A stretch of 61,922 nt of DNA, the filler included, from Choristocarpus tenellus KU-1152 (lineage: Eukaryota > Protista > Phaeophyceae): NCBI GenBank assembly GCA_964200185.2. It is 6 parts of 6 records of this genome, joined end to end, with 100 filler letters (N's around TTAATTAATTAA, not from the genome) between each part and the next. Parts side by side here need not be neighbours in the genome. Positions count along the whole stretch, not along the records: positions 1 to 15,657 come from CAXNAD020000954.1; 5 more parts are not named here. One strand, 5' to 3'. A model generated the notes under the pieces. That model was not told the DNA's origin and made no database searches. It saw only the letters and a program-made list of their open reading frames with translations. Positions within the stretch are counted from its first letter, which is position 1, and each line of letters starts with the position of its first letter. The translations under genes and the position numbers were made by a program. Positions 1 through 15,657 of this stretch are shown one piece after another.

Positions 1-156
1 AATATCTGGGACAACTCGTATGGCACGTACTATGCTTGTATGCTTGATAGGTGTCGACTGTTCCATACTTGGTATGCACCATGGAGTTGTAACGGTGACT
101 GATGATCTTATGATGAGGTACGAATGATGTAAATGTGAGTAACGACCTGTACCGAT

Positions 157-396
157 GAGCCAAAGTATCTTAGAGGGTAGAGCCGCGTCCATTGGGGGAC
201 CAAAACCCAATATTTTGGCTATCGTGTTCGTTAAAAAGTGTCAATATCCTTGTTCCGAATACATCTTTAATGACGTATACATCGTATCTAGTCCGAAATA
301 TCTTGTAGTAGGAAGATGTCATAAAACCCCCGAGGCAAGTCAAGCCCCAAATGGACAAACAGGGCAAAACTTGTACCCTCTAAGATACTCTCACTC
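157..396 (+). mobile_element. MITE family A (GAG...CTC ends, about 23-bp imperfect TIR, 4-bp TSD; Sola-like), copy with an internal deletion
   Basis: Starts GAGCCAAAGTATCTTAGAGGGTA and ends TACCCTCTAAGATACTCTCACTC; perfect 4-bp duplication CGAT at 153-156 and 397-400; body homologous to copies at 15126, 15892, 46664, 52362. Superfamily is inferred from GAG/CTC termini plus 4-bp TSD. Confidence 0.9.
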
Positions 397-2486
397 CGAT
401 ATGTGCGAATCAATAGTCAGTATGAACTGGTAATACTGTATCGTATCAATGACACAAAAGATGAGTACCCCATGTCTTACAAGATCACCTAAAAACTACT
501 ATTTTTGTAGGCCGTTTATTTCAGTGGGAGGAAACAAAATCTGAATTTATGATACATGATGTAAGTTTACCGCCGGTGGAGAGCTTGTTGAAACGAGCAG
601 TGTGGTGCGCATGCCCGTGCCCTGTTAGTGTTTTAAGCCGTGTTGTATCTACCCCACTCAATGATGATGACTATTGCTTTGTCATAACCCCATATGTTGT
701 GTGTGTGAACGTGCGTGTTGTTTCGGTTACCACTACTAATACACCTACTACTCCATACTACAAGTACTCCTATCACTATAATCCATTCATACACTGGCAG
801 CTGCAAGGAAAGGGTATTATGATTACTAAATGCACTCCCTCAATTCTTTCCTCCGCCTCTTCTCCTAGTGCTGTTGTTGTGGTTGTCAACATCATTACTC
901 CTCATTATCCATAATCAATGGTGTTTGCTTCGTTATTGTTTTGTAGAGTAATGGTGACATTTTCAACTTCAATTAGGACGGTTGTGAGTATTGCGTACTC
1001 CAGGAGAAAACATATCACGACAGAGATACCGCCAATGTTGTCTTAGGAAGCGATGGGCAGCAACAAGGAAAAAGAGAAGAAAAGCTGGTGAGAAAGTGCG
1101 TAAGAATTGGTTATTGCAGTACTACTGCTAGCTCTAGTGGGTATTAGTACTTAGTAACGGTAACGTTGAATGGACGAACAATTGTCAAACCATCTGCTGT
1201 CAATTGTGCCGATACAACGTAACAACAACAGCAGGCACCCACTTCACATCAAAAACATATAGGACAACATAACATTTCCTCACCTACATCGGCCTACTAC
1301 GATGCCCACATGCCACCAAAATACCAAACACAATTGTGCAACTACTACAGCGATCTGGGTCACCTCACAGGAACGAGAAGAAAAACACTGATACAGAACA
1401 ACAACGCCATTTATGACTTAAGGAAGGGGCGGGTGTATGAGGTAACAGTGATTCCTGTAGTGAGGAGGTTGTCCTGATCTCTCAAGAAAACGAATGGATT
1501 ATGAACACAAGAGGTTGATACAACGACAACAACAAGGACAAAAACAACAGACACATATCATGGTCAATTGGTTGTCTCCACCACAATGTCCGAGTGCAGT
1601 GCCTTCTCAAACAAGTTCGGAAGCAGCGATGGTGCTGCTTCAAAATCTTACCACACACAACAAGGAAGTAGACAATACAGCAACTATGATACTGATTTTT
1701 AAGAAAATGAGACTACAAAAGGCAAGAAGTATAACTACACCAGAACAGAAACGACATCAGCAGTGATATGAGCGAACCCACCCTGTGAAACAATAAGCAC
1801 ATGAAGGAAAACATTGGGGGTGGGTATCTACAATGAAAAATGCACCAACTTCAGAAAGAGTACACCAAGAAAAAGCAGCAAATGCAAATGATGTAAGCAA
1901 ATAATAATCACAAAGCTTGAAGCAGATGAGCTATTTTTCTCTCCAAGGTAATCAACAGTTGAACACCAGGAGGATACACACACGCTCGACATCATGCCAG
2001 CATGAGGCTTACTTTGATCGGACTCCTTCTCAGCAACCTCACCCTTGATAAAATACACTTGCATTATGTTCCATCTCAGAAAAACACTTCCTCTTCAAAT
2101 TCAGAATATATACTCCAGTACTTATCATTTACTCCTTTAAGAGTTCAACACGCTTTCAAAAAGATTTCTCGACAACGTTATATAAGAAATATCTACCGCA
2201 TACCTCCTTTATAATTACAACGAATATAGCAGAATAAATCGAAATCGATTAATAAAAAGAAATGTGATATTTGAAACAAATGCTCCAAAAAGGATATGAC
2301 CAGAAGAGTCCTATACTGATTTTAAGTGATTTCACAATCAGCTTTTATTCTTGTATGATCAGATTCTGTAAGTTTTTCGCCTTTTGTTACTTTCTCACCT
2401 TGTTTTACGTATACTAGCTTTATGTAGAATTGTTGAATGATACTTACGAATTATAAATCATATCACTTGTTTCAGAGATTGTTATT

Positions 2487-2576
2487 TGGATAAATTCTTT
2501 TATCTCCAATTTTACGATCAAGTATAATTTCGGAGTTACCTGTTCCTTTAAATTCTTCAAAAGTAACTTGATCCAT
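2487..2576 (-). pseudogene. rho: Fragment of bacterial transcription termination factor Rho (30 codons)
   Basis: Translates [30 protein letters not shown], matching the conserved Rho motif [14 protein letters not shown](S/M)E..LDRK..DKR..P; GNSE is the form I recall for Alphaproteobacteria; AT-rich codons. Similarity stops abruptly on both sides. Confidence 0.9.
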
Positions 2577-2721
2577 CATACAGGGGTAAAGGTAAAGGAA
2601 TAAAGGGTAAAGGTGAACAAAGGGTCTATAGTTCTTGCAATTCCAGCTCCACATACTTCACATAAATGACGTCAATGTTTTGATGATATGATGAAGTTTG
2701 CTGCTTGTGAAGATGTTCGTT

Positions 2722-2780
2722 CTATTTGAAACCAAGGATGGCACAAAAGTAGCTGTTGAAATACAACGCAAAGATGAGCA
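2722..2780 (+). pseudogene. Possible fragment of an Rpn/PDDEXK_2-family nuclease or transposase
   Basis: LFETKDGTKVAVEIQRKDEQ resembles the D-x-L-x3-DG-x3-(V/I)E(I/M)Q core of Rpn-family PD-(D/E)XK proteins; short, motif recognition only. Confidence 0.4.
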
Positions 2781-3291
2781 AGTAGGTGCAGAAGTACCAT
2801 GTTTTTTTGTTTTCATTGGAGACTTAAGATTGCTGGAAATTGTCCTTTACTTCATCTATCTACAAGAAAAAATTGTTTAGAAAACATTTTATTCACACGA
2901 GACATGAATATAACGATAAAGAGAGAAAATAATATCATTTACGCTAATGACATGGACTAGTAGCAAATAATTCCGAATTATGAGTGGAGTTAGAATTGTT
3001 ACGAGTATTTTTGTTATTTGTTGTTTAGAAAATATTGGAAAAAGTTGGAAATTAAAATTCTTCATATCATACAAAATAGGTATGTATGTATACATAATTT
3101 GCTGTACCTGACAGAAACATGGTTTGTTTGCCTTTCACTAAAAATTACAAGATAGATAATAGAAGTGATTGATCTTTAAATTACTTATTTCTACAGATTG
3201 CTTTTTACCAAAAATATTTAGTAGAACTTGAAAATGTGATTGAAAAAAATGTCGAGAAAAATTGAGCTCTACTTTGTTATTCGATTATCCT

Positions 3292-3360
3292 GATACTCTT
3301 AGATCGCTTGAAGATGCAATATTAGATTTTGCTGGTTAGATTTTTGTTATTAGTCACGAT
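3292..3360 (+). pseudogene. ettA: Fragment of ABC-F ATPase EttA/ChvD (23 codons, one internal stop)
   Basis: Translates DTLRSLEDAILDFAG*IFVISHD, matching EttA D(V)xTLRALExA(I/L)LxFAGxxxVISHD; AT-rich codons; no flanking EttA sequence. Confidence 0.8.
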
Positions 3361-3439
3361 ACAGGGCATTGATTTTATGTGGGATCGTTATCATCAATCA
3401 TCAGGGAACTAATATTAGTGAGGTGCTTTTACCAACTTC

Positions 3440-4650
3440 ATGACGAGTCCTTCTCACAAGCTGTTTGCACGAGCCCCACAGAGCACAGTCCTTAGGATTG
3501 TCCATCCACACCCTCCTTTCCTCAGATGTCCCCTCAGAAGATCTTGTAGAAATCATTGGCCAAGACTGGGTAACCTGGGGGGAAACAACATCCCCTGCAC
3601 CTACCCCAGAGGTACATATCCTAGCGGCTCATGACGCCAGGATCACGAGAAGGGCCCAACATGAGATCGCATGCCTCCTGAACAGGATCCGTTTCGACTC
3701 CTTCAGGACAAAACTGGCCGGCCTGCCTAGTGAAGCACACCAAGGGCGGGAAAGCTCCTCATTGGCCCTAGCGCGCCATGGGAGCCAGTGTGGACAAGGG
3801 GCAAACGCGTGGGCCTCAACTCAACCTCTGCAACAAGCATGCCAGATCACCCCTCTGGAATTCCCCAGGGAGGGAGGAGGTCGTATCCAACAGGTGTCCA
3901 GTGGCAGGGTGCAGGAGGCAAGATGTTGATACCAGACATGCCCGTACCTGCCTCAAGGCAGGGGGACAGGTACGACAGCACACCCCAACGGTGAAACGCC
4001 TACACCAACTATGCAAGGGGATGGTCATCCCTTGCTCTAAAGAGGACGGCAGCCCTTTCACAGCGGACAGGAATCTCCGCATGGATCTGGTGTTCCGTGC
4101 AGGGGCGTTGGCGGTCGCTGGAACAGCCCCCTACAGGGACAAAGACCTACTTGGTGTCACATACGCGGAGGTATAGGCAATCTCCCACCTTACCCACTCA
4201 TCCGCCAGTAATGGTGTAACTGCTGCGTCAGCCGAGCCGCGAAAGTGCACCCACTACGAGGGCTCTTTTGATCCTCGTAGTTATATCCTCAACACCTTCT
4301 CCGTGGAAAGGTTTGGGTGCGTCGGCAAGCAAGCGGAATGCTTCCTGGATGAGCTGGCTACTCACATGGTAGGGGGGCGAGGGGCTGGAGGTTATAGCAG
4401 GAAAGGAGTAGTTAAATCCCGGCTACGCCAAATTGTCTCGGTAACTACTCAAGTGGAACCATCCAGACGTGTCGTGCGTTTTAAGCTGGGATCACCAGGA
4501 AGATGGGCATGGAGGGGCTTACTGGAGATTCTTCGGATGCCTCCCTAGCTCCTCCACCCGGGGAGGCACAGGTATATAGGTAGATTGGAGACACAGGAAG
4601 TTAGTAGTACGACATATAGATAGTGAAGTAACAAATGGATTAGTGTCTTT
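3440..4650 (+). mobile_element. 5'-truncated, decayed CRE-like non-LTR retrotransposon (zinc finger plus restriction-like endonuclease region)
   Basis: Frameshifted ORFs 3465-3929, 3778-4176 and 4303-4548 give CPVAGC..DTRHARTC..GGQVRQH (CCHC-type finger), LRMDLV..LLGVTYA (RLE core), AEPRKCTHY, FSVERFGCVG and RLRQIVSV, the C-terminal layout of CRE-clade RLE elements. No RT domain; ends approximate. Confidence 0.75.
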
Positions 4651-5430
4651 CACATTCATGACATTATATTTCTTTAGGGCTTATACTGACAATGTGTATA
4701 TAGTTTTCATTAGTTTCCCCCTGACACATCTCCAAAATGTCAGAGGGAATAATAATGAATATATATATTACTATTATATATATAGCAGAATGGTACAGTA
4801 TCCAGTCAAAAACGCTGGTAGAGATCCTTGTGCCATCCCCAGCATCTCGCGGACAAGTAGATTCATGACCAAAAACTGAAAAACTTACGCAAACCCTACA
4901 CATGGGGGACATTTGGGGGAGGATTTGTCCTATGCACGTGAAAGTCATTCGACAAGGGCACACCGTGAACTTCAAGTGTACGTCGGTTCCTCGCTCCAGA
5001 GTAGATGTGCACCAAGCATATGCAAAATAAAAAAATAAAAAATATCCCTCCCCTCATTATTGTCCTATGTTTTCAATCGTCGCGTGATTCCTAAGTAATC
5101 TCCTACTCCTTCCTCCACCTCCCCGTTAACGCTCCATCCTTATACAGGCAGGAGAATCACACACATGCATATGTAGCGACATGCGACCAGCACCTTTACC
5201 ACCAAATGGCACAAACAAAGACATTACAGGTACACACCAATATTTCGTGTCTAGCCCAAAAAATACACAACAATACACTTTCGCATTAGATTTCATAGGC
5301 GAAATATGGTCACCTGTCAAGATTCGAACAAGGTGACGTTAACGACAAAAACATCAAGCCGCTATCCCATACCAGCTCGCCTTGATTGACACTCAACCGA
5401 GAAACAGTGTGCGTGCACCTCCAAACACTC

Positions 5431-7505
5431 CTACTGCACTGCGCTACCTGTGTATCTCATACACCTTAGGGCACACTGATAACGTAAAACGTTATTGATG
5501 CCACCCGCACCGCAGAAGTACACCTCGGTATTGGGGTCTGCATCCTGGATTATTTCCTGCAGCAAGGTGGAAATGGTCAAGAGGCAAGGTTGAGGGAGAG
5601 CTCATTAAGCATACACGTTTTTGTCGCTCGGTGACCTAGTAAGGAGAAATAGTTGCGACTACCATCTTATGGAATACAGACACTTTTGAACATGTTGATG
5701 ACTACGTTTGTTCGGAGAAGATTCTTACATACACTACTACATATTTGAGTATTTTTTTCTTACGTACCAAATTCAATATCATGATCGAAATTCCTGATCT
5801 TTTCTCTCAAATATCGATTCAATACACAACAAGCGTTGTTGCAAGCCATGGCTGCCCACCTTCATGTTTAAGCGACCCATTGCCAGCTGCCCTGCTTTAT
5901 CAGGGTTTGTAGAGTCGTGGAACTGCATATTTCGCACGAGATGGAGATGTGGATGAGGGTCGATGTAATAGATTTCGGTAAGACAGAGAGTGGGGTTGTC
6001 TGTGACTTCAGTTGGTTCATTCTTAGTGGAGTTCCTGGCAGGCGATGAGCAGTGAGATGCCCAAAATTGAGGTTCCAGATCAGTCAAGAAAAAACGGACT
6101 AATTGCCTTCCTGCCAAGCTCAACATTCTCCAGTTAGTTAACAGATAAGAAAATTGATGTTGAAGCTCTAAAACTGCTTTTGTCCTTTCCTCCTGGGCTA
6201 ATCTTACTTGACCGGAGTGCTCTCCTGCCAACACACTCGAAGCCTTTTGGAGTGTATAACGAATCGGACTTTCCTTTGCTACGTTTCCGCGAATTTCCAC
6301 TGCACAAATTAAATCGTCAATGCCGTAAATATCTCTACATATACCTGGATATCCTCATGCTGGGTAAGGGCCGTGCGAATCGTGAAATTAGGGTTCCTCT
6401 CTGTCAACAGCGTGTTGGTCACAAATTGCAACAGGGGAAGACTTGCAGCAGAGTAGCAAATGGTCACAGGATGATGTGACACGAGACCGTTGCTCTTTAC
6501 ATATGCTATGAAGTCTAGGACCAGCCCAGCTCCAGCGCCTGTACCAATCACCTGCACCGGTTTAAGAAGTCAAGAATTCAGGGTCGATTTCACAGGCAAG
6601 TCCGATTGGCAGATCATCGACCCTGAGCTCTTGGACAGGTTTTGCCACCGTAGATATGGAGAAGGGGGGATTTTGTGCTTCAAAATGGCCACTTGGCCAT
6701 GCCTGAGGCTATGCGTAGGAGAAGGTGTCCACAAACATCCTTCACAGTTACATTTTTTGCTTACTTTTCAATATAGCGGATATTGTCATTGTTCAGGGAG
6801 AACCACTAAACAGGGGTTGGAAGGTAGTATGCTACGGTAAATCAACACAGTGGAGTCGTGAATATGCAATGGGACATCCACAGCATCCCACGGGCGATAG
6901 CGTTCCTCACCAGGAGTGGTGGGAGGTTGGGGAACTCCGTCAGGCGACCATACTCGGAACGGTATGGTCCGTAAGTAGACACAGGGACGTTTGCGAAGCT
7001 CTTGTGCATGAGCGCTTCCTCATCTGATATCTTTGCTGTCTCTGGTTGGCGGAAGCCACGGTACTGATGCGTCATTCCAAAACATGTGCACTCACTGTAG
7101 AGAAAGTGTCAAGACGGGAACGGGGGGGTGGTCACAGGAGATTATATGTTAGGGATTGAGGGCTGTGGGGGTCATTTGGTCTGACGAATATTTGAGCAGT
7201 GCTTGATCGACCACTTGCCTATTATCCACTGTTTGTGTTTGTTGGGAGGGGATTCCAAGTGTGGTACACCATATACATACCACACACACATATATATATA
7301 TATATATATACATACCACATGAAGTACATACAAACGTAAACAATCTAACATGGCACAGAGGGGATGATTGTGCCCAGTTCCTTGCATTCACAGTTTCGTT
7401 GATACTGGTATGACCTACTTTGATCGACTACTACCCTTGATCCTCAATTTGTCCGCCTTGCACGTTCCCCTACAAGAATGACCTTGAATGTCACATGCAC
7501 GTACA

Positions 7506-7546
<41 letters not shown>

Positions 7547-10500
7547 ATCTTTACTTTCAAGAACCGTTACTACCCGATATGATAGAGGTGCGCTCATGAT
7601 ACTTGCAATGGGACTCAGGTATTGTCTCAGGAATCCTCGAGAAAGGGCTAGGAAGCCCGTTTGTAGGGTACATTGTTCTACTCTCGCTCATTTAAATTTG
7701 GTTCTTTGCCTAACCCACATTTTTTTTAAAAGCTCAATATTGATAACCAATAAAAGAGCAATAACTAAATATACATGTTATGTGTGTGTGTGGGAAACAT
7801 GATGCCAAGGACAAGTCAGACCCTATAGAAAGTTAGTATTGCAAATTACAACACCGAGAATGTTTCTATTGTAGTAGGAGTATAACCGCCCCTGGCACCT
7901 CAACATGATCTCAACCTCAGCACATACTCCAGAGTACAGGTAGAGTTCTACAGAGCTCGGCTTCTACAGTATAGAGTGGGCATACACACAGGTGTCACTA
8001 TGTTGCAGCAAGTCGTGTTTGCTATCAGACTGCATCATCAACTACTCTATGGAAGGCTTCTTTGTTTCGACCCGTAAGCTGTGACCGTGCTTGGCGGATT
8101 CCTGGCTTTGAAGTGTCCAATAAGGGTCTAATCGTCGCAAGGAACTTGTTAATGACCCCCCCCGCACAATATGATTCGTCCTGTGGGAGGATATACTATC
8201 AATAGCGAGAGTAAACACCATCACCTATAGTTCTGAATTGTTATCGTACCTAACCTGGCCGATAATGCGAGAATGGAAATAACGATCGATGAGTTGATTC
8301 ATCCTCTGTAAGATCCGTTCATACGTTCCAGGGCGTTCAACAAGTGACCAAAAAGTACAGGACAAGAGAAGGACATCCCCACACGCTATCAATTCATGTA
8401 CAATAGGGGTCACCATTCTTTCACAATCACAAGGATTGGTTCTTAGGGTTGATAATACTATCATAATCGACGATCTCTACAGTGACAATACTGTAATGCC
8501 GTTCAGAATTGATTTTCAATGTGTGCGGAAAATCTCCTGATGCCTATGCCCGGGGGCGATTCCGAATGACTACAAAATTTGATAATGTTCTGTTATGGGT
8601 GGCTGACGATGATACTGACCTCTACTGCGACAGCAAGGTGCATAACAATCAATTGATCAACCCAACAATTCTGCATCCACCTTCTCCATCCATTTCCCCA
8701 AGCAACCTCAAACTCTACTAGCTCGTACCCAGGTGGTCTTTAGTTAGAGGCGTTGGAGTGCTTGCTGGCGGATACAGCTAATCAAAGCTTCGATTCGAGC
8801 AATAGTTGTCCTACTAGCATACAATATCCCCTTCGCCCACTAAACAGGAAAAACAAGATTATGAGATGAGGTCTAATGGAAGCTTGGAGTTTGGTCGAAA
8901 TTTTCAACTTCCGACTTTATCAGGTTAGTGAGGACACAGTCCACCTCCATCACTCTTTCATAGCTCACTGGGGTCAGGACTTGAACCAATGTTCTTGGTT
9001 CTATAAATTATTGCCCTTGTGATAGAAGCTAAAATGTGTGGAGGAGTGTGACTGCTGCTGCGGGTAAAACACACCTGAATTCTGTATCCTTTCTTCGTTG
9101 TACGCGAATGATCGCCATTATATCCCACGATCCATCAGGAGCAGCTCTAACCAGACTGGGTAGTCGTTCCCGTCCGCTGTTATCCAGCTCAAAGTTGCGC
9201 TGGTTCAAAAATCTTGGTGTAGAAGTGCGCACAAGGCACGTGAGACCAGTATCGGCATGGTCCTTACTCAACCTGATGCACAAGGGAACCGTGTACTAAG
9301 TGTGAAAGCTGCTTTGACCTTTGGGGTTATAGAGACGTATACCGTACGGTATGAAAGGCGGCACGTGTTGTATATATCCAATACACCTTAGAAATAAATA
9401 CATACCTACAAACCTTGAGATGAATACATGCATACATAATAATACATCATTCATAATACATCATTCATAATACATCATTCATAATACATCATTCAAAATA
9501 CACAATACATACATACAATGTGCAGCAGCACAAAATTTTAGTGTGAGGTACAACGTGTACGGCCTGTTTTGTTCAAAGAAACTTGTCATGACACAGTGTT
9601 CGTATCAGGAACTACACCAACAAGGTATAGTAGAGAAAGATGGTATCGCTGCGTAGAAGAGAGTTTTCAGCGAGAGGCACAGTTTCGACATATCCTACAA
9701 TGCACTGACCTCAGAAAAGGGGGAGCTGGGACTGTGATGGGTCATTGAAATACATTCCTGGCATGTCTGCATTTGGTAGAGCGAGAAATGTCATTCCATT
9801 TTGGCCCTCTAGAACAGTTGGATGTCTAAATGTTATGCAAACACCAGAACGTCATCCTCTCTTGGCACACATATGTTTTAGATAAGGTACTACTTAGTAT
9901 CATAGTATTGGAGTATACCGTGGATCTGCTACGAATCTCTGGGCAATTCACCTGCCGCTTTGTTCCAAGGAGTCCTCAACTGCACGACGCACAGATCTCT
10001 GGGATGTGGTGGATGAATCGAGACCTGGTGGAGTGGTCGTTGGAAGTGAGGGAAACAAGTTAGATATATCTCTTACTCGCCACTATATTTGAGGGGGAGA
10101 TGATCAAGAACGCCGAGTGCACTGGTGGTGTGCATAAAGTGCAGAGATTATCGTGTCGTACAATCGAAAACGTTGCTGCTGGGACGTGTAATTCTTTCAA
10201 TCATAATCACATTGAAGAGACACTGTTACCGTAAAATATCGAGTCTCATGATTGGTGTCAGAACTCAGTGTACTTCAACCGAACTTCGGAGATACAGTCC
10301 ACTACAATCAAATAGAGTCCACTGTTGAACCGTCCATTAGCATTGGTTCCTTAGTGTGGAGTTACCCGTGCCACATGCATACCGCCCTACGCGGTATGTG
10401 ATCACAACTTGCAGTTTGCACCTACGTATGGCTATAGCATGCTTCATCCCTGGAATTGGTATATATATTCTTCAACATACAAACACGTTATGTGACACAC

Positions 10501-13500
10501 ATGAGTCGACAAAGAATTTGACTTTATCTCTTACATTTTCCTCACACAACAAAGGTAGAATCTCGTTTCATGTTCTTCTTAAGGTGTCGCCTCCCTCTTC
10601 AGGCTCGGAGTTCACACTCTACTGTAAGTGTGTTTATCTCTATTCACAACTGGATGGGATATATTCAGAGTTTATATCATCCACGAACTTCTCTACTTGG
10701 TAACAAGACTCTACTCCGAGAATTCATCCCTATCCTGCGTCTCACAGCACTCAATAGTATGTGATCCTTCTACAACAGTCAATCAGTCAATTCACACAGC
10801 ACATATCGCGAGATCTATCACAGTGAATTGCAACAGTTCTTCAGTGCACTGGGTCACCTCTTCGACTATAGGTCATGAAGCCTCTACACAGAGGACTTCA
10901 TGAGACGCAACGATTCATGTGAGTCTCACATGAGTTGGCTTCCGCATACTCTCGCAAATATATCACATTTTCAGACTATGCCATAACATCAGCTAGTCTC
11001 GAGTCCTGTAGATTTGGAGTACAAGAGAAACCCAATACATCTTGCCCCTGAACGCTGATTCGATAAGCCATTTTCTCGTCCTAGATTCACAACAAAGAAT
11101 TTATATAGTCGTTCAAGCACGTTACCCGTCTGCACCACAAGTGCCCCACTTCGTCACCAATAAACAATCGTACAAACGAAGAAATTTCGTCTATGGAATG
11201 TCTACTTTATACGTAAGACAATGGCTTCTATTCTCAATTAATTGCTTGTACCGAAGGAGCCAAAAGGACGTATGTAACCACTGTGGTTCTTCTCGCATAC
11301 AACTTGTTTAGGCTCCTTGCTCACTTTGTTAAGATTATATTTTCCAAATTTGGAATGCAGACCTTGACGACGGTTTGCTGGGTGGTGGGAGTTGGAAGTT
11401 ACTGAAGTTATAAATTAAAGCTAGAAATGGGCAGGTCACAAACGTAAGTTGAGTGCATTTCTACTAGGCCAAAACAAACACGAGTAAAATTTAGAAACCA
11501 AAACTCCTCTACTTCCAAGATGTAGAACCTATTTCTGATACGCGTGTTTGACACGCCCGTTCCCCACTATTCTTCTGATTGATACATTAATGATTATTAT
11601 ATTCACTTCAATCTTTGGAATATCCCAACCTGTGGTCAGAGGAACTTCACACACCACTACTTCTCAAGTTGCGTTTCGATCATCCTAACAAAACCAAAAC
11701 ACCACTCTCTTGGACGATATAAGCAAAATGACAACCCTCGAAACTGGTCATTGATATACACTATTGCAACTCACCTCATGTATTGCACATCAAGGTAACT
11801 ATTTCTTGTCCTGCATTCAACACATATTACACCATTCAGCAGCTTGTCGTACCTTACGTAACACGTTTTCAGTACCACTCACGGTCATAATTGCGAAATC
11901 GAACTCTTCAACACATCGCATATATAGTGTTTCAACAACATGGACTCCAAAAACGCGCCCACAATCAGCTAAGGAAGAAAAGAAGGCAAGGAAATAATCA
12001 TGGCGCCTTAACCTTGATGCCGAAACGAAGAAGAGGTTGTTTCAATGTTATGTTTCATGTCTTTCACTCACATTTGGAAAAAGTGTCTTGTATTGAGTGC
12101 AACTTGATATTTACGATTCAAGATTTGAAGATGGTATGATGAGAAACAACAACAAAGGGACAAGTGCATTTACTGATTCTATAATTGGTGTCTAATTTTG
12201 TGACCCTTTTGAGAGATGACGGACTCAACTCCATCTGGAAGGTGGGTCAACCATCTCTACCTTGTTTCCATTCAGAACAAAAGTGATGATGAAAACACTA
12301 ACAAAAAGGTTCACTACCAACACCGACAACAGTGCGTGCACTTCGCTAGAATTATATCCTCCCACAGGAAGAACCAGGGTCGGGGGTGGTCAACAACGGG
12401 TTCCTGGTGCAGAGAGTAGACCCTGTTGGACATACCAATACTAGCAATCCGCCAAGGACAACCCTACTGTGGTTACGAAATCGTTTTTGATTTGGTCGCA
12501 AAGTGTACACAATGCAAGGATAGTAAACATTCTCTCTCCACCAATAGAAAATACTAGAATTATCAGTAATATTATAGACCAATCAAAACCTTGTATAAAT
12601 TGAGAAAAGGGCATGTTTTGAGGGATGTATATATATATTGATATATATATATAGTTCTTGGTGTGGAACTGGAGAGGTTAAGGTGGACTGATTCTGATAC
12701 AAAACCAAGAATCAAATTTGTACCAGTTGACAGAAGTACGCTGGACTCTTAGGAAGATCTTGAACTACAAAAATCGTACGAAGATAGTCGAGTCGAAGAG
12801 TACTAGAGAAGTTGATATCTACAACGTAGAACCAAGGTTTTCAGCGTACAGTTTCGATATATTCGAACACAAGTACATTTGTCAGGCATGGATGGACTAC
12901 ACCATCGATCTCCTGCCATATTCGTAAACAAAACCCCTTGACATTCGTGAACTCACTCGCTGGCAAGTGTACTAACTCAACTGTACCGACTATTTTTTAA
13001 ATAACGACTTGACAGGTCAAGGAAGTGCGAATATTTTCGATGTTGACTGAAGTTATCACAGACAGGGCAAGCGAAAAATCACTAACCTTACTCAAGATTG
13101 ATTAGATCATTTGTTGGACAGCAAATGCTACACTCACCACCATTCGGGTCGGCTTTTAGCGTTCCAACCACCAGCTCTATTTCCTTCTTGTCCCCAAACG
13201 CATCAACTCCAACCATAGTGTCCTCTGGTTCCACTTCCTCAGGGAAATGTCCCACGTTGATGACCTTTCCCGACTTTGAAATGTGATCACTCGAATTGAT
13301 AGTGGAGCCAAACATTCCACTTTGCTGTTTGTACGACTTGTTTAGAGCGAGCCTCTCAGACATTGCTGAGGTAAGGGTGAAGCGATGCCCTGACCAGTTA
13401 ACGTCCGTCGTGATAGGCAACTCGATTGATGCCTTACCCTGCTTGTTTTCGAAATTTTGGTTATTCTGGTTAGTAGTTGGCAGGGGTTGTTACCAATCGT

Positions 13501-14676
13501 CGGGTGCGGTGTATGTGCCCGGATTCCGCACAGGTACAATCTTGGGAGCGTTTAGTGAGATAGGAGGCTGAATGCGACAAGGAAGTATTGTTCGTTCTTG
13601 CATGAACATCCTGAGAACGTTGCTATCTACTACTCCTAACTGAGGATACCTACCATGGAAGCACTTGATATTCCCGTGTTTCGGAGCTTTGTTTCGAGTT
13701 TCTTGTCCTCAGATGAAGGTCCTCCATGGATGCCTTGTGTGGGTATCAGGACCGGACTTTGCTGCCTCCGTAATAGTTGGAATGTGAGCTGAGCAGGTGG
13801 TGAATGGGTGTGGCATCTCCCCCCTCCACCTGCAGGTGGACAAGTATGATCGACGGCCGTGGAAAGGTTAGGGATGTGGAAAGAGCAGGGGCGACGGACA
13901 ATGGCTCTGTCACATATGCGCATACCAAGAACACCAAGGGTGTATCTATCGTATTCGAAACGAACATTGTTTCTAGCAACCTAGTGTCAAAACATTCGGT
14001 ATTGTTGTGCGACAAGGTCAGGTGAGAGGCCATGCATCTTGTACACCGTAGTCTCTTGTCACGTACAGCATGGAAGATCAGTAGATACTACACTAGTGGA
14101 AAAATCCATCAATCTTTCAAGACCATGAGAAGAAACATGCAAAAGACTCACGATTGGGGAGGAACACCAACAGGTTACTGGACGCTCAGTGCGGTGGGTG
14201 ATACTGAACCAATGGGGGACTATATAGTGCCCCAGTGTACATGCCACCTCCACTAGAAGAGTTGAGCAAAAGTACATCTATGACACTTCGGAGAGATATA
14301 GAGTAGCAGCCTTAGCACGACAAATTGAATTCTTGGTGTGGATTAGGACAGGGTGGCTGGTGACGCAAAGTATCTCGGGGGGGGAGAGGGGTCTACACCA
14401 GGATGTCCATTTTGCACCAAAATCAGGAAAAGTGCATTTACATTTTCCATCCGATGTATGCAACCAAATAGCCAATAATTGCGATATGAAATAATTGACC
14501 CCAAATGGACAGCCACCACCCCCCCCCCCAAATACTTTGAGCCTGGTTGCACCATCTTTTTTCGCTTCGGGGATCATCACTCCTGAGCCAGTAGATATCG
14601 CAGATTGTTTTGGGAATAGAGGTTTGCTTCCACAGCATCAGCATGTAGTTCTCGTCCAGTGTAATGCAAATATCCT
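5431..14676 (-). CDS. Ferric reductase/NADPH oxidase-like protein, FAD- and NAD(P)H-binding C-terminal half (multi-exon, possibly a pseudogene)
   Basis: GT-AG exons about 14676-14553 (DIYWL), 13829-about 13655 (WRGEMPHPFTTCS), 13567-13138, 10024-9952, 9272-9075 (WDIMAIIRVQ), 7094-6911 (STYGPYRS), 6551-6345 (VIGTGAGAG), 5922-5860 (MGRLNMK), 5556-5431 (EVYFCGAG, stop). Phases are consistent from the 13567 exon onward. Motif order HPFT, IR, GPY, GxGxG, GR, FCG is that of NOX/FRO enzymes. In-frame stops at 13711-13709 and 13492-13490; transmembrane exons not found. Confidence 0.75.
9439..9500 (+). repeat. 14-bp tandem repeat (ATAATACATCATTC) about 4 copies, intronic
   Basis: Directly visible. 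Confidence 0.85.
14362..14543 (-). mobile_element. MITE family B (GGC...GCC ends, G/C-run subterminal, 4-bp TSD)
   Basis: GACGCAAAGTATCT...AATACTTTGAGCC with perfect TGGT duplication at 14358-14361 and 14544-14547; homologous to copies at 35375, 49283, 50661, 53325. Confidence 0.85.
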
Positions 14677-15125
14677 CTTATGATTTCATCCTGGTGATAG
14701 GTTTACGGAATGGAGTGGGTACCTCACAACATCTGCTACATCGGGGTGGCTCGCACTCTCCTCATTGCAATTGCCACAATCTCAATTCAACTGTCCCTTT
14801 CACTGCCCCAGCCCTACAAGATCTGCGTATGACACTCTTTACGATGGTTTAGTTTGAACTACAGGAGTGCATCCCCATCTCTGAGTCCGGTGTGGCCAGT
14901 AAACAGGCTCAGAGCAACATTACAACCATTGGCGCACACCGATCATCAATATTGGGCAATGGCAATATATCAAATACCCAATGAATGCATATTCCTCCAA
15001 GACCTTGTGTGCATTCAGTCCACCTCAGCTTCACACCTTCAATATCACAACAAAGAGAGCTCTGAGGATTGCCAGACACAACAGAAATATTATGTCGTGG
15101 TGGTATGTGTTGGAGGAGCAGCAGA

Positions 15126-15383
15126 GAGTGAAATTTTCTTAGAGGATACGAATTTTGTCCTGTATATCCATTTGGGACTTGGCTTCCCACAGGTGTTTTA
15201 TGACATTTTCCTACTCCGATATGTTTCGGAGTAGGTAAAATTTGCACGTTATGAAAAGGTGTGTCCGGAACAAGGATATGGACACTTCTTCAAAAACATG
15301 ATAGTCAAAATTACATCAAAATCGGAACATTGGAATTTGACCCCGAAATGGACGCGGCTCTACCCTCTAAGATACTTTGGCTC
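15126..15383 (-). mobile_element. MITE family A, full copy (258 bp)
   Basis: GAGTGAAA...GATACTTTGGCTC with perfect CAGA TSD at 15122-15125 and 15384-15387. Confidence 0.9.
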
Positions 15384-15657
15384 CAGATTGTTGTTTCTAC
15401 AAAATAATGTTGCCCCGTTATTTTCAATAGGGCACCTACTCTACATTGGGATTGCATCGGATCAAGGAATATGTACAGTTCCCAGGCCTAGCATGTAACC
15501 TTGACCTAGACTCTTGACTAATTGATAGCTCACGTCCTTCACGATATGAAGGTCAAATGACATATCATATATCCAGTCAATACTATTTTTCATTTCCGAC
15601 AACACACACGAAACTTAGTCGATGGAGGTTGGGCACTATCGCATGAGAGATCTTGCC

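Follow-up and report, generated by a model that had tools for sequence, protein, structure and literature searches.

Short Rickettsia-family gene scraps packed into an AT-rich block of a Choristocarpus tenellus contig: a probable genomic fossil of an intracellular bacterium

Filler DNA occurs at repaired double-strand breaks, and nuclease-cut foreign DNA is inserted into the genomes of transformed green algae. Mosaic insertions of organelle DNA that were formed by end joining have been described in nuclear genomes (PMC6215612), and genomic fossils of Wolbachia have been reported from nematode nuclear genomes, including that of Dictyocaulus viviparus, with about 1 Mb of Wolbachia-derived DNA (PMC4046930), and those of Wolbachia-free filariae (PMC2882956). 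In the alga Volvox carteri, a nuclear rickettsial region of ~9 kb contains 16S rRNA, murB, ddlB, and an ftsQ-like piece and has kept the endosymbiont gene order (PMC4324946). Here, we describe an AT-rich block of 1,393 nucleotides (nt) in the brown alga Choristocarpus tenellus KU-1152 (assembly GCA_964200185.2), contained in a stretch of DNA of 61,922 nt, filler letters included, that was analyzed as a whole and is referred to below as the window. The block packs together short scraps of the bacterial genes for transcription termination factor Rho, EttA, a HlyD-family type I secretion adaptor, and NADH-quinone oxidoreductase subunit G (nuoG), with a further candidate scrap of the aspartyl-tRNA synthetase gene (aspS). 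With a probability of roughly 0.68, we regard it as dead nuclear DNA, a fossil of an intracellular bacterium of the Rickettsia family whose short fragments were joined during break repair and have since decayed.

The block resembles the Wolbachia fossils in that short gene fragments of a Rickettsiales endosymbiont are co-assembled with host sequence, contain stop codons or insertions and deletions, and are spread over many contigs with no intact bacterial genome. It differs from them in its host, a plastid-bearing alga, and in its donor, a member of the Rickettsia family, and its pieces are far shorter (70 to 200 nt) and are packed as non-colinear patchworks. With the Volvox region it shares Rickettsiaceae-derived, apparently non-functional DNA in an algal nucleus beside transposon-like sequence, the host lineage being one that harbors such endosymbionts; unlike that single colinear region, it consists of gene scraps of ~100 nt from unlinked loci. 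As in mosaic organelle insertions, non-contiguous donor fragments in mixed orientation lie at one nuclear site, but the donor here is a bacterium. As in filler DNA, short unrelated fragments appear to have been ligated at a break with loss of adjacent sequence (here, part of a truncated transposon); unlike filler DNA, which comes from experiments or from the cell's own DNA, the material here is of natural bacterial origin, and its age has left time for decay. What sets the block apart is that three features coincide: an alga is the host, the donor is of the Rickettsiaceae type, and the pieces, which are very small and non-colinear, are packed together. Otherwise, the block belongs with the known genomic fossils of endosymbionts.

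Positions 1-15657 of the window are contig C954 of a 164-Mb assembly (labeled G000) of 27,310 contigs. On this contig, the GC content was 0.28 to 0.34 over about positions 2045-3437, compared with 0.40 to 0.58 in both flanks, and the block delimited in this way (2045-3437; 31% GC) corresponded to the AT-rich 1.4-kb block of an initial annotation made from the sequence alone. A search of the whole assembly with the block returned only the match to itself, indicating a single copy. The strongest scrap was a 30-codon piece of Rho on the minus strand (2487-2576), which was free of stop codons, had sharp ends on both sides, and matched the NCBIfam Rho model with an E value of 1.7e-12 at model positions 323-355, that is, over 33 to 35 of its ~415 positions. 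Twenty-six of its 30 residues were identical to Rickettsiaceae-type Rho, and the twelve residues on either side of the scrap, which are near-invariant in 117 alphaproteobacterial Rho proteins, were missing from the window. The piece and its abrupt ends had both been proposed in the initial annotation, and both were confirmed. Across the assembly, this scrap was the sole Rho-like sequence apart from the plastid ATP synthase.

The second piece, a plus-strand scrap of 23 codons (3292-3360), comes from EttA (ABC-F), specifically from its second ATP-binding domain, and contains an in-frame TAG at 3337-3339. Around this stop codon, 19 of the 23 residues were identical to EttA of four bacterial genomes (G083, G120, G102, and G150), and a comparison with Rickettsiaceae-type EttA gave a tblastn E value of 8e-9 and a DNA identity of 81% over 73 nt, so that the EttA piece with its stop codon also held up. 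When searched alone, the part before the stop had no significance in Pfam, NCBIfam, or PDB scans. The scrap may extend to 3265 across an 18-nt gap. A minus-strand stretch at positions 2168-2236, lying 1 kb away from the confirmed plus-strand scrap of EttA, bore a weak likeness to the first ATP-binding domain of EttA (E value, 0.7), which was not significant by itself.

The third piece had been annotated as an M23/biotinyl-type segment; it proved to be a genuine bacterial scrap under the wrong name. On the minus strand at 2301-2423, it encodes part of the lipoyl-like barrel-sandwich segment of a HlyD-family type I secretion adaptor; it corresponds to model positions of about 54 to 93 and contains an in-frame TAA at 2322-2324. 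The adaptor model TIGR01843 matched it with an E value of 1.1e-4, and when this model was run over all 164 Mb, the best match was positions 2304-2423, read through the one TAA (E value, 0.003). In a six-frame comparison (tblastx), it was 51% identical over 41 amino acids (aa) to positions 386775-386897 of G120, the bacterial genome used as a reference here (E value, 2e-7). The second-best match to the HlyD-family model in the assembly, on another contig (C1596:2706-2819; E value, 0.09), had no six-frame similarity to G120 and is probably due to chance.

A scrap of nuoG, encoding the N-terminal 2Fe-2S motif, was newly found by tblastx on the plus strand at positions 2802-2870 (matched at 2805-2873 in the comparison with the whole G120 genome), with 34.1 bits to G120:1002384-1002452, inside an open reading frame (ORF) for a NuoG protein of 690 aa. 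This piece was searched only within the family of G120, where its frame was matched in 116 of the 130 genomes, nearly all of the best matches falling in an ORF of about 670 to 735 aa; the E values per genome were mostly 3e-4 to 5e-3, and the identities were 45 to 71%. A borderline plus-strand scrap of aspS (2604-2711), with an in-frame TGA at 2667-2669, was 44% identical over 36 aa to G120:174761-174868, within an ORF for an aspartyl-tRNA synthetase of 606 aa (35.0 bits; E value, 0.013), and on this similarity it is counted as a candidate only. A G/A-rich low-complexity run with repeated GGTAAAG-like units (2577-2620) starts within the 27 nt that separate the Rho scrap from the aspS candidate and overlaps the beginning of the latter. 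The remaining piece of the initial annotation, an Rpn-type PD-(D/E)XK core on the plus strand at 2722-2780, was not supported: it had no match in Pfam, NCBIfam, or PDB at E values up to 10 and none in the whole G120 genome in the six-frame comparison, and it is left unassigned. For the same stretch, an Atlas lead to ABC1/UbiB, which scored 0.90 but shared few features, found no confirmation in tblastn against a Rickettsiales UbiB or in the whole G120 genome and was rejected.

The block was compared in six frames (tblastx) with the complete G120 genome. The scores were 67 bits for Rho, 51 for the adaptor, 46 for EttA, 35 for aspS, and 34 for nuoG. With the same genome as target, the highest score among 40 dinucleotide shuffles of the block was 33.6 bits, a maximum that was also exceeded by the 35.0 bits of the aspS candidate. 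Ten control frames of comparable length, taken from other parts of the window, had no match with an E value below 0.1. Scraps other than rho were therefore significant as well, which runs counter to a rho-only outcome, named beforehand as refuting. The four validated gene scraps make up 25% of the block, and inclusion of the candidates raises this proportion to 33 to 35%. The longest matched stretch was 41 codons, and there was no ORF covering most of a protein; because the matches reach at most 41 codons, the block does not qualify as a functional horizontally transferred gene.

The donor was sought in an even sample of 151 genomes from the order that includes a metagenome-assembled genome titled "Rickettsiales bacterium". 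The same six genomes (G083, G102, G120, G150, G024, and G059) were among the best for Rho (87% of 30 aa, tied with a few others) and were the best for EttA (93% of 15 aa) and for the adaptor (53 to 59% of ~32 aa; E values, 3e-7 to 4e-6), and all six belong to the 130-species GTDB family of G120, which we take to be the Rickettsiaceae. The reference G120 is a single contig of 1,111,496 bp with 28.9% GC. When a degenerate pattern of the Rho peptide was searched in species-representative genomes, the hits were mostly Alphaproteobacteria, with a few records labeled Acidobacteria or Myxococcales. Within the 130-species family, no markedly closer donor was found, the best adaptor identity being 63%. 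By sequence similarity, these results indicate that the pieces are bacterial and come from one AT-rich lineage of Rickettsiales; a Rickettsiales/Holosporales-like endosymbiont had been suggested initially, and the Rickettsiales part of that suggestion stands, rho, EttA, and the adaptor all having their best matches in one family.

In G120, the five genes lie at 93.6, 174.8, 386.8, 652.8, and 1002.4 kb, 80 to 350 kb apart and on both strands, whereas in the window all five pieces fall within 1.1 kb (2301-3360), the Rho and adaptor scraps on the minus strand and the other three on the plus strand. Because of this spacing in G120, the block is not one colinear bacterial segment, which had also been named beforehand as a refuting outcome, and the mapping to unlinked loci bears out the initial view that it was not a contiguous one. 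In addition, the neighborhood of rho in ~120 alphaproteobacterial loci did not contain the other pieces of the block.

The scraps also showed inactivating changes. In-frame stops were present in two of the four validated scraps (TAA in the adaptor and TAG in ettA) and in the aspS candidate (TGA), and ettA may in addition have an 18-nt gap. In the Rho scrap, Q3 and T5 replace the E/D and I/V that are found in each of the 117 alphaproteobacterial sequences compared and in the six best readable Rho sequences of the order Rickettsiales. Family models of Rho and DnaE run over the 164 Mb detected only scraps in open frames of 48 to 85 aa and no full-length gene, so that nothing in the assembly points to contigs of a living bacterium. 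A contaminant or chimeric contig would be marked by intact coding sequence and by matching bacterial contigs; instead, stops lie inside the pieces, and neither rho nor dnaE occurs in full length. Judging from the sequence, neutral decay in the host explains these features better than mis-assembly of fresh reads from a bacterium does, and the stops, the Q3 and T5 replacements, and the lack of intact rho or dnaE favor decay over contamination, as had been argued initially from the EttA stop and the substitutions in Rho.

On its right side, the block abuts a transposon-like host repeat on the plus strand (3438-4770), for which a first look at the assembly gave 3831 candidate copies, those scored being 78 to 86% identical. 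In other copies, this repeat continues for another ~850 bp upstream of the position that corresponds to 3438, and the copy in the window is therefore truncated exactly at the junction (3436-3438), that is, at the right edge of the block. AT-rich filler as a general trait of the upstream end of this repeat was considered and rejected, as most of the "truncated" copies were merely cut by contig ends and the others had no comparable block. On the left side, a flank of 217 nt (1828-2044) has an ordinary composition and is also single copy, matching only itself. Left of 1828, the sequence is 94% identical to a sister contig (C21700), which passes into repeats at its counterpart of position 1827 and ends thereafter. 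The contig with the block is free of gaps and also carries the high-copy repeat and a repeat resembling a short interspersed nuclear element (SINE), so that, at the level of the assembly, the block is co-assembled with host sequence.

Several further features of this contig were recorded. Three contigs (C21700, C12967, and C23742) were 94 to 97% identical to the window at positions 396-1827 and 3495-6900; all three end in repeats, and they may represent a second haplotype or a recent duplication. The SINE-like repeat, which is ~240 nt long and has thousands of candidate copies across the assembly, occurs at positions 157-396 and 15126-15383 in opposite orientations, and at the first of these sites it is absent from C21700. 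Within the block, 26 further stop-free frames had no NCBIfam match below an E value of 0.08. The longest open frame (81 codons; 2892-3134, minus strand) is unassigned, with no match in Pfam or NCBIfam and none at E values up to 0.001 among 1.84 billion representative proteins. A distant blastn search of the block against a plasmid collection gave no match, and an Rfam scan of positions 1800-3700 gave only a weak match to a fluoride riboswitch (3540-3604; E value, 0.029), which was taken as chance.

The initial annotation had placed the bacterial material at one host locus, and this was contradicted by a second AT-rich patchwork on contig C3948 and by scraps on about six further contigs. The second patchwork (C3948:8247-9141; L156:2233-3127), which was compared with G120, was found by chance through a search for bacterial small-subunit (SSU) rRNA. 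It contains a 68-codon scrap of an MscS-type channel (54% identity to G120; E value, 8e-18) with one stop and, 8 nt beyond it, a 27-codon scrap of a biotin-carboxylase-type protein (67% identity; E value, 8e-6); the two genes are 680 kb apart in G120. Weaker matches then follow in an AT-rich stretch up to the end of the contig. Thus, the idea that shredded symbiont DNA was ligated into the host as repair filler kept its bacterial, non-colinear, and decayed character and lost its single locus.

Probes for rpoB and dnaE, which were picked independently of the block, identified the scraps on the other contigs. Three rpoB scraps matched the RpoB protein of G120, namely, C16841:1770-1916 (57% over 49 aa, with one TAG), C647:13410-13658 (37% over 84 aa, with two stops), and C7107:1166-1258 (77% over 31 aa); they sit in open frames of 38 to 171 aa and are shared weakly or not at all with the plastid rpoB. 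Three dnaE scraps matched the DnaE protein of G120, namely, C1559:332-520 (75% over 63 aa; E value, 2e-23; in a frame of 85 aa), C8234:4642-4797 (with one TAG), and C16866:572-649. A general DnaE model returned the same two strongest sites and nothing more in the assembly.

The search for SSU rRNA also touched organelle sequences. The largest contig (C1; 120,357 bp) is the plastid genome, with rps18, ycf3, atpB, and atpE side by side, and carries two copies of a bacterial-type 16S rRNA, and the full-length SSU rRNA on C71 (32,342 bp) was taken as mitochondrial. The assembly is hence that of a plastid-bearing eukaryote, in agreement with the algal origin stated in the initial annotation. A 368-nt piece on C13979 (C13979:600-978; L155:642-1009) is 97% identical to the C71 mitochondrial SSU rRNA and looks like a recent nuclear insertion of mitochondrial DNA. 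Directly left of the rickettsial scraps on C3948, an SSU-rRNA-like stretch (C3948:7515-8301; L156:1501-2287; 57 bits) is 72 to 79% identical to the host mitochondrial SSU rRNA, compared with 72% to the 16S rRNA of G120 over 174 nt, and may be an old mitochondrial insertion that was co-ligated with bacterial DNA. This direct juxtaposition of rickettsial scraps and a mitochondrial-SSU-like stretch is akin to mosaic organelle insertions.

The sequence of events that we consider probable would have begun with a cytoplasmic bacterium of the Rickettsia family, the DNA of which would have been broken, before or during integration, into pieces of roughly 70 to 200 bases (roughly 70 to 125 in the block) from distant parts of its chromosome. 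These pieces would have been ligated to each other in both orientations, perhaps together with organelle DNA, and would have entered chromosome breaks by end joining, here presumably at a break at or in the transposon copy (3437). The inserts would then have decayed neutrally by acquiring stop codons, changes at invariant residues, and possibly deletions of small size. The block would encode nothing functional and would be a fossil of a past or present endosymbiont, and the same process would have operated at other places in this genome. A more far-reaching version, in which many patchworks, perhaps hundreds, arose by a regular route that cuts the bacterial DNA into pieces of about 100 nt, mixes them with organelle DNA, and ligates them into chromosome breaks, some of the patchworks giving rise to anti-bacterial small RNAs as a repeat-less memory of infection, seems to us highly improbable.

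Several points weigh against the view of the block as a fossil of endosymbiont DNA joined during repair. The block and its junctions were read from the assembly, and the rpoB and dnaE scraps on other contigs from match tables. The sister contigs C21700 and C12967 (94%) end in repeats short of the block and therefore do not show whether a second copy of the locus contains it. No target-site duplication was found around the block plus the repeat. For the remaining approximately two-thirds of the block, the family and protein searches assigned an origin to no part, which is what would be expected if this remainder derived from poorly conserved genes or spacers. Finally, the donor genome is absent from the collections, the best identities being 51 to 87% for protein and about 80% for DNA, and decay in the host is consequently inseparable from divergence of the donor.

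Two other origins of the patchwork were given equal and low probability. One is an assembly artefact, in which reads from a low-coverage bacterial contaminant or a live endosymbiont were wrongly connected, both among themselves and with host sequence, and the patchwork exists in no chromosome; the fragmentation of the assembly, with many of its 27,310 contigs ending inside repeats, would allow for this, and pieces of 70 to 125 nt are near short-read lengths. Such an origin would nevertheless require at least six mis-joins in 1.4 kb, and the stops in the adaptor and ettA scraps and in the aspS candidate, together with the changes at invariant sites of Rho, are not expected of fresh bacterial reads. 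Furthermore, intact rho and dnaE occur nowhere in the assembly, hence giving no sign of donor contigs, and the scraps on other contigs likewise sit in short frames with stops. An artefact is accordingly unlikely. We judge as no more likely the insertion, long ago, of one large colinear bacterial segment that was reduced to scraps by many deletions and inversions in the host. Old endosymbiont insertions do erode (PMC4046930, PMC4324946), and the degree of decay shows that the insertion was not recent. However, such a history would have to bring five gene-internal scraps with sharp ends, from loci 80 to 350 kb apart, into 1.1 kb in mixed orientation, with loss of >99.9% of a megabase insert through at least five precisely placed deletions or inversions, and unrelated scraps are packed just as tightly on C3948, two of them being only 8 nt apart.

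A functional role was also weighed, namely, that the block is an infection record that is transcribed and processed into small RNAs directed against the bacterium, in the manner of the clusters that give rise to PIWI-interacting RNAs. Foreign scraps on mixed strands beside a transposon would be compatible with this, whereas the block is single copy, the Rfam scan detected no structured RNA, and the decay at conserved sites is as expected with no selection on the sequence. Bacteria are not known to be targets of small-RNA silencing in eukaryotes, and we consider this role very improbable. The reading of the block as a decayed, repair-joined remnant of Rickettsia-family DNA, which would lack any function, is therefore preferred.

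The scraps indicate that an algal lineage harbors, or once harbored, an intracellular bacterium of the Rickettsia family. Only one comparable nuclear trace, the colinear region of Volvox, has been documented. The tiny, non-colinear pieces suggest that the bacterial DNA was shredded before it reached the nucleus, which bears on how the DNA of endosymbionts and organelles enters chromosomes. Contamination screens can be triggered by such scraps, which can also be mistaken for horizontal gene transfers; here, both conclusions would be wrong. Should the scraps prove to be numerous across the genome, they could be used to reconstruct the gene content of the bacterium and to date the symbiosis.

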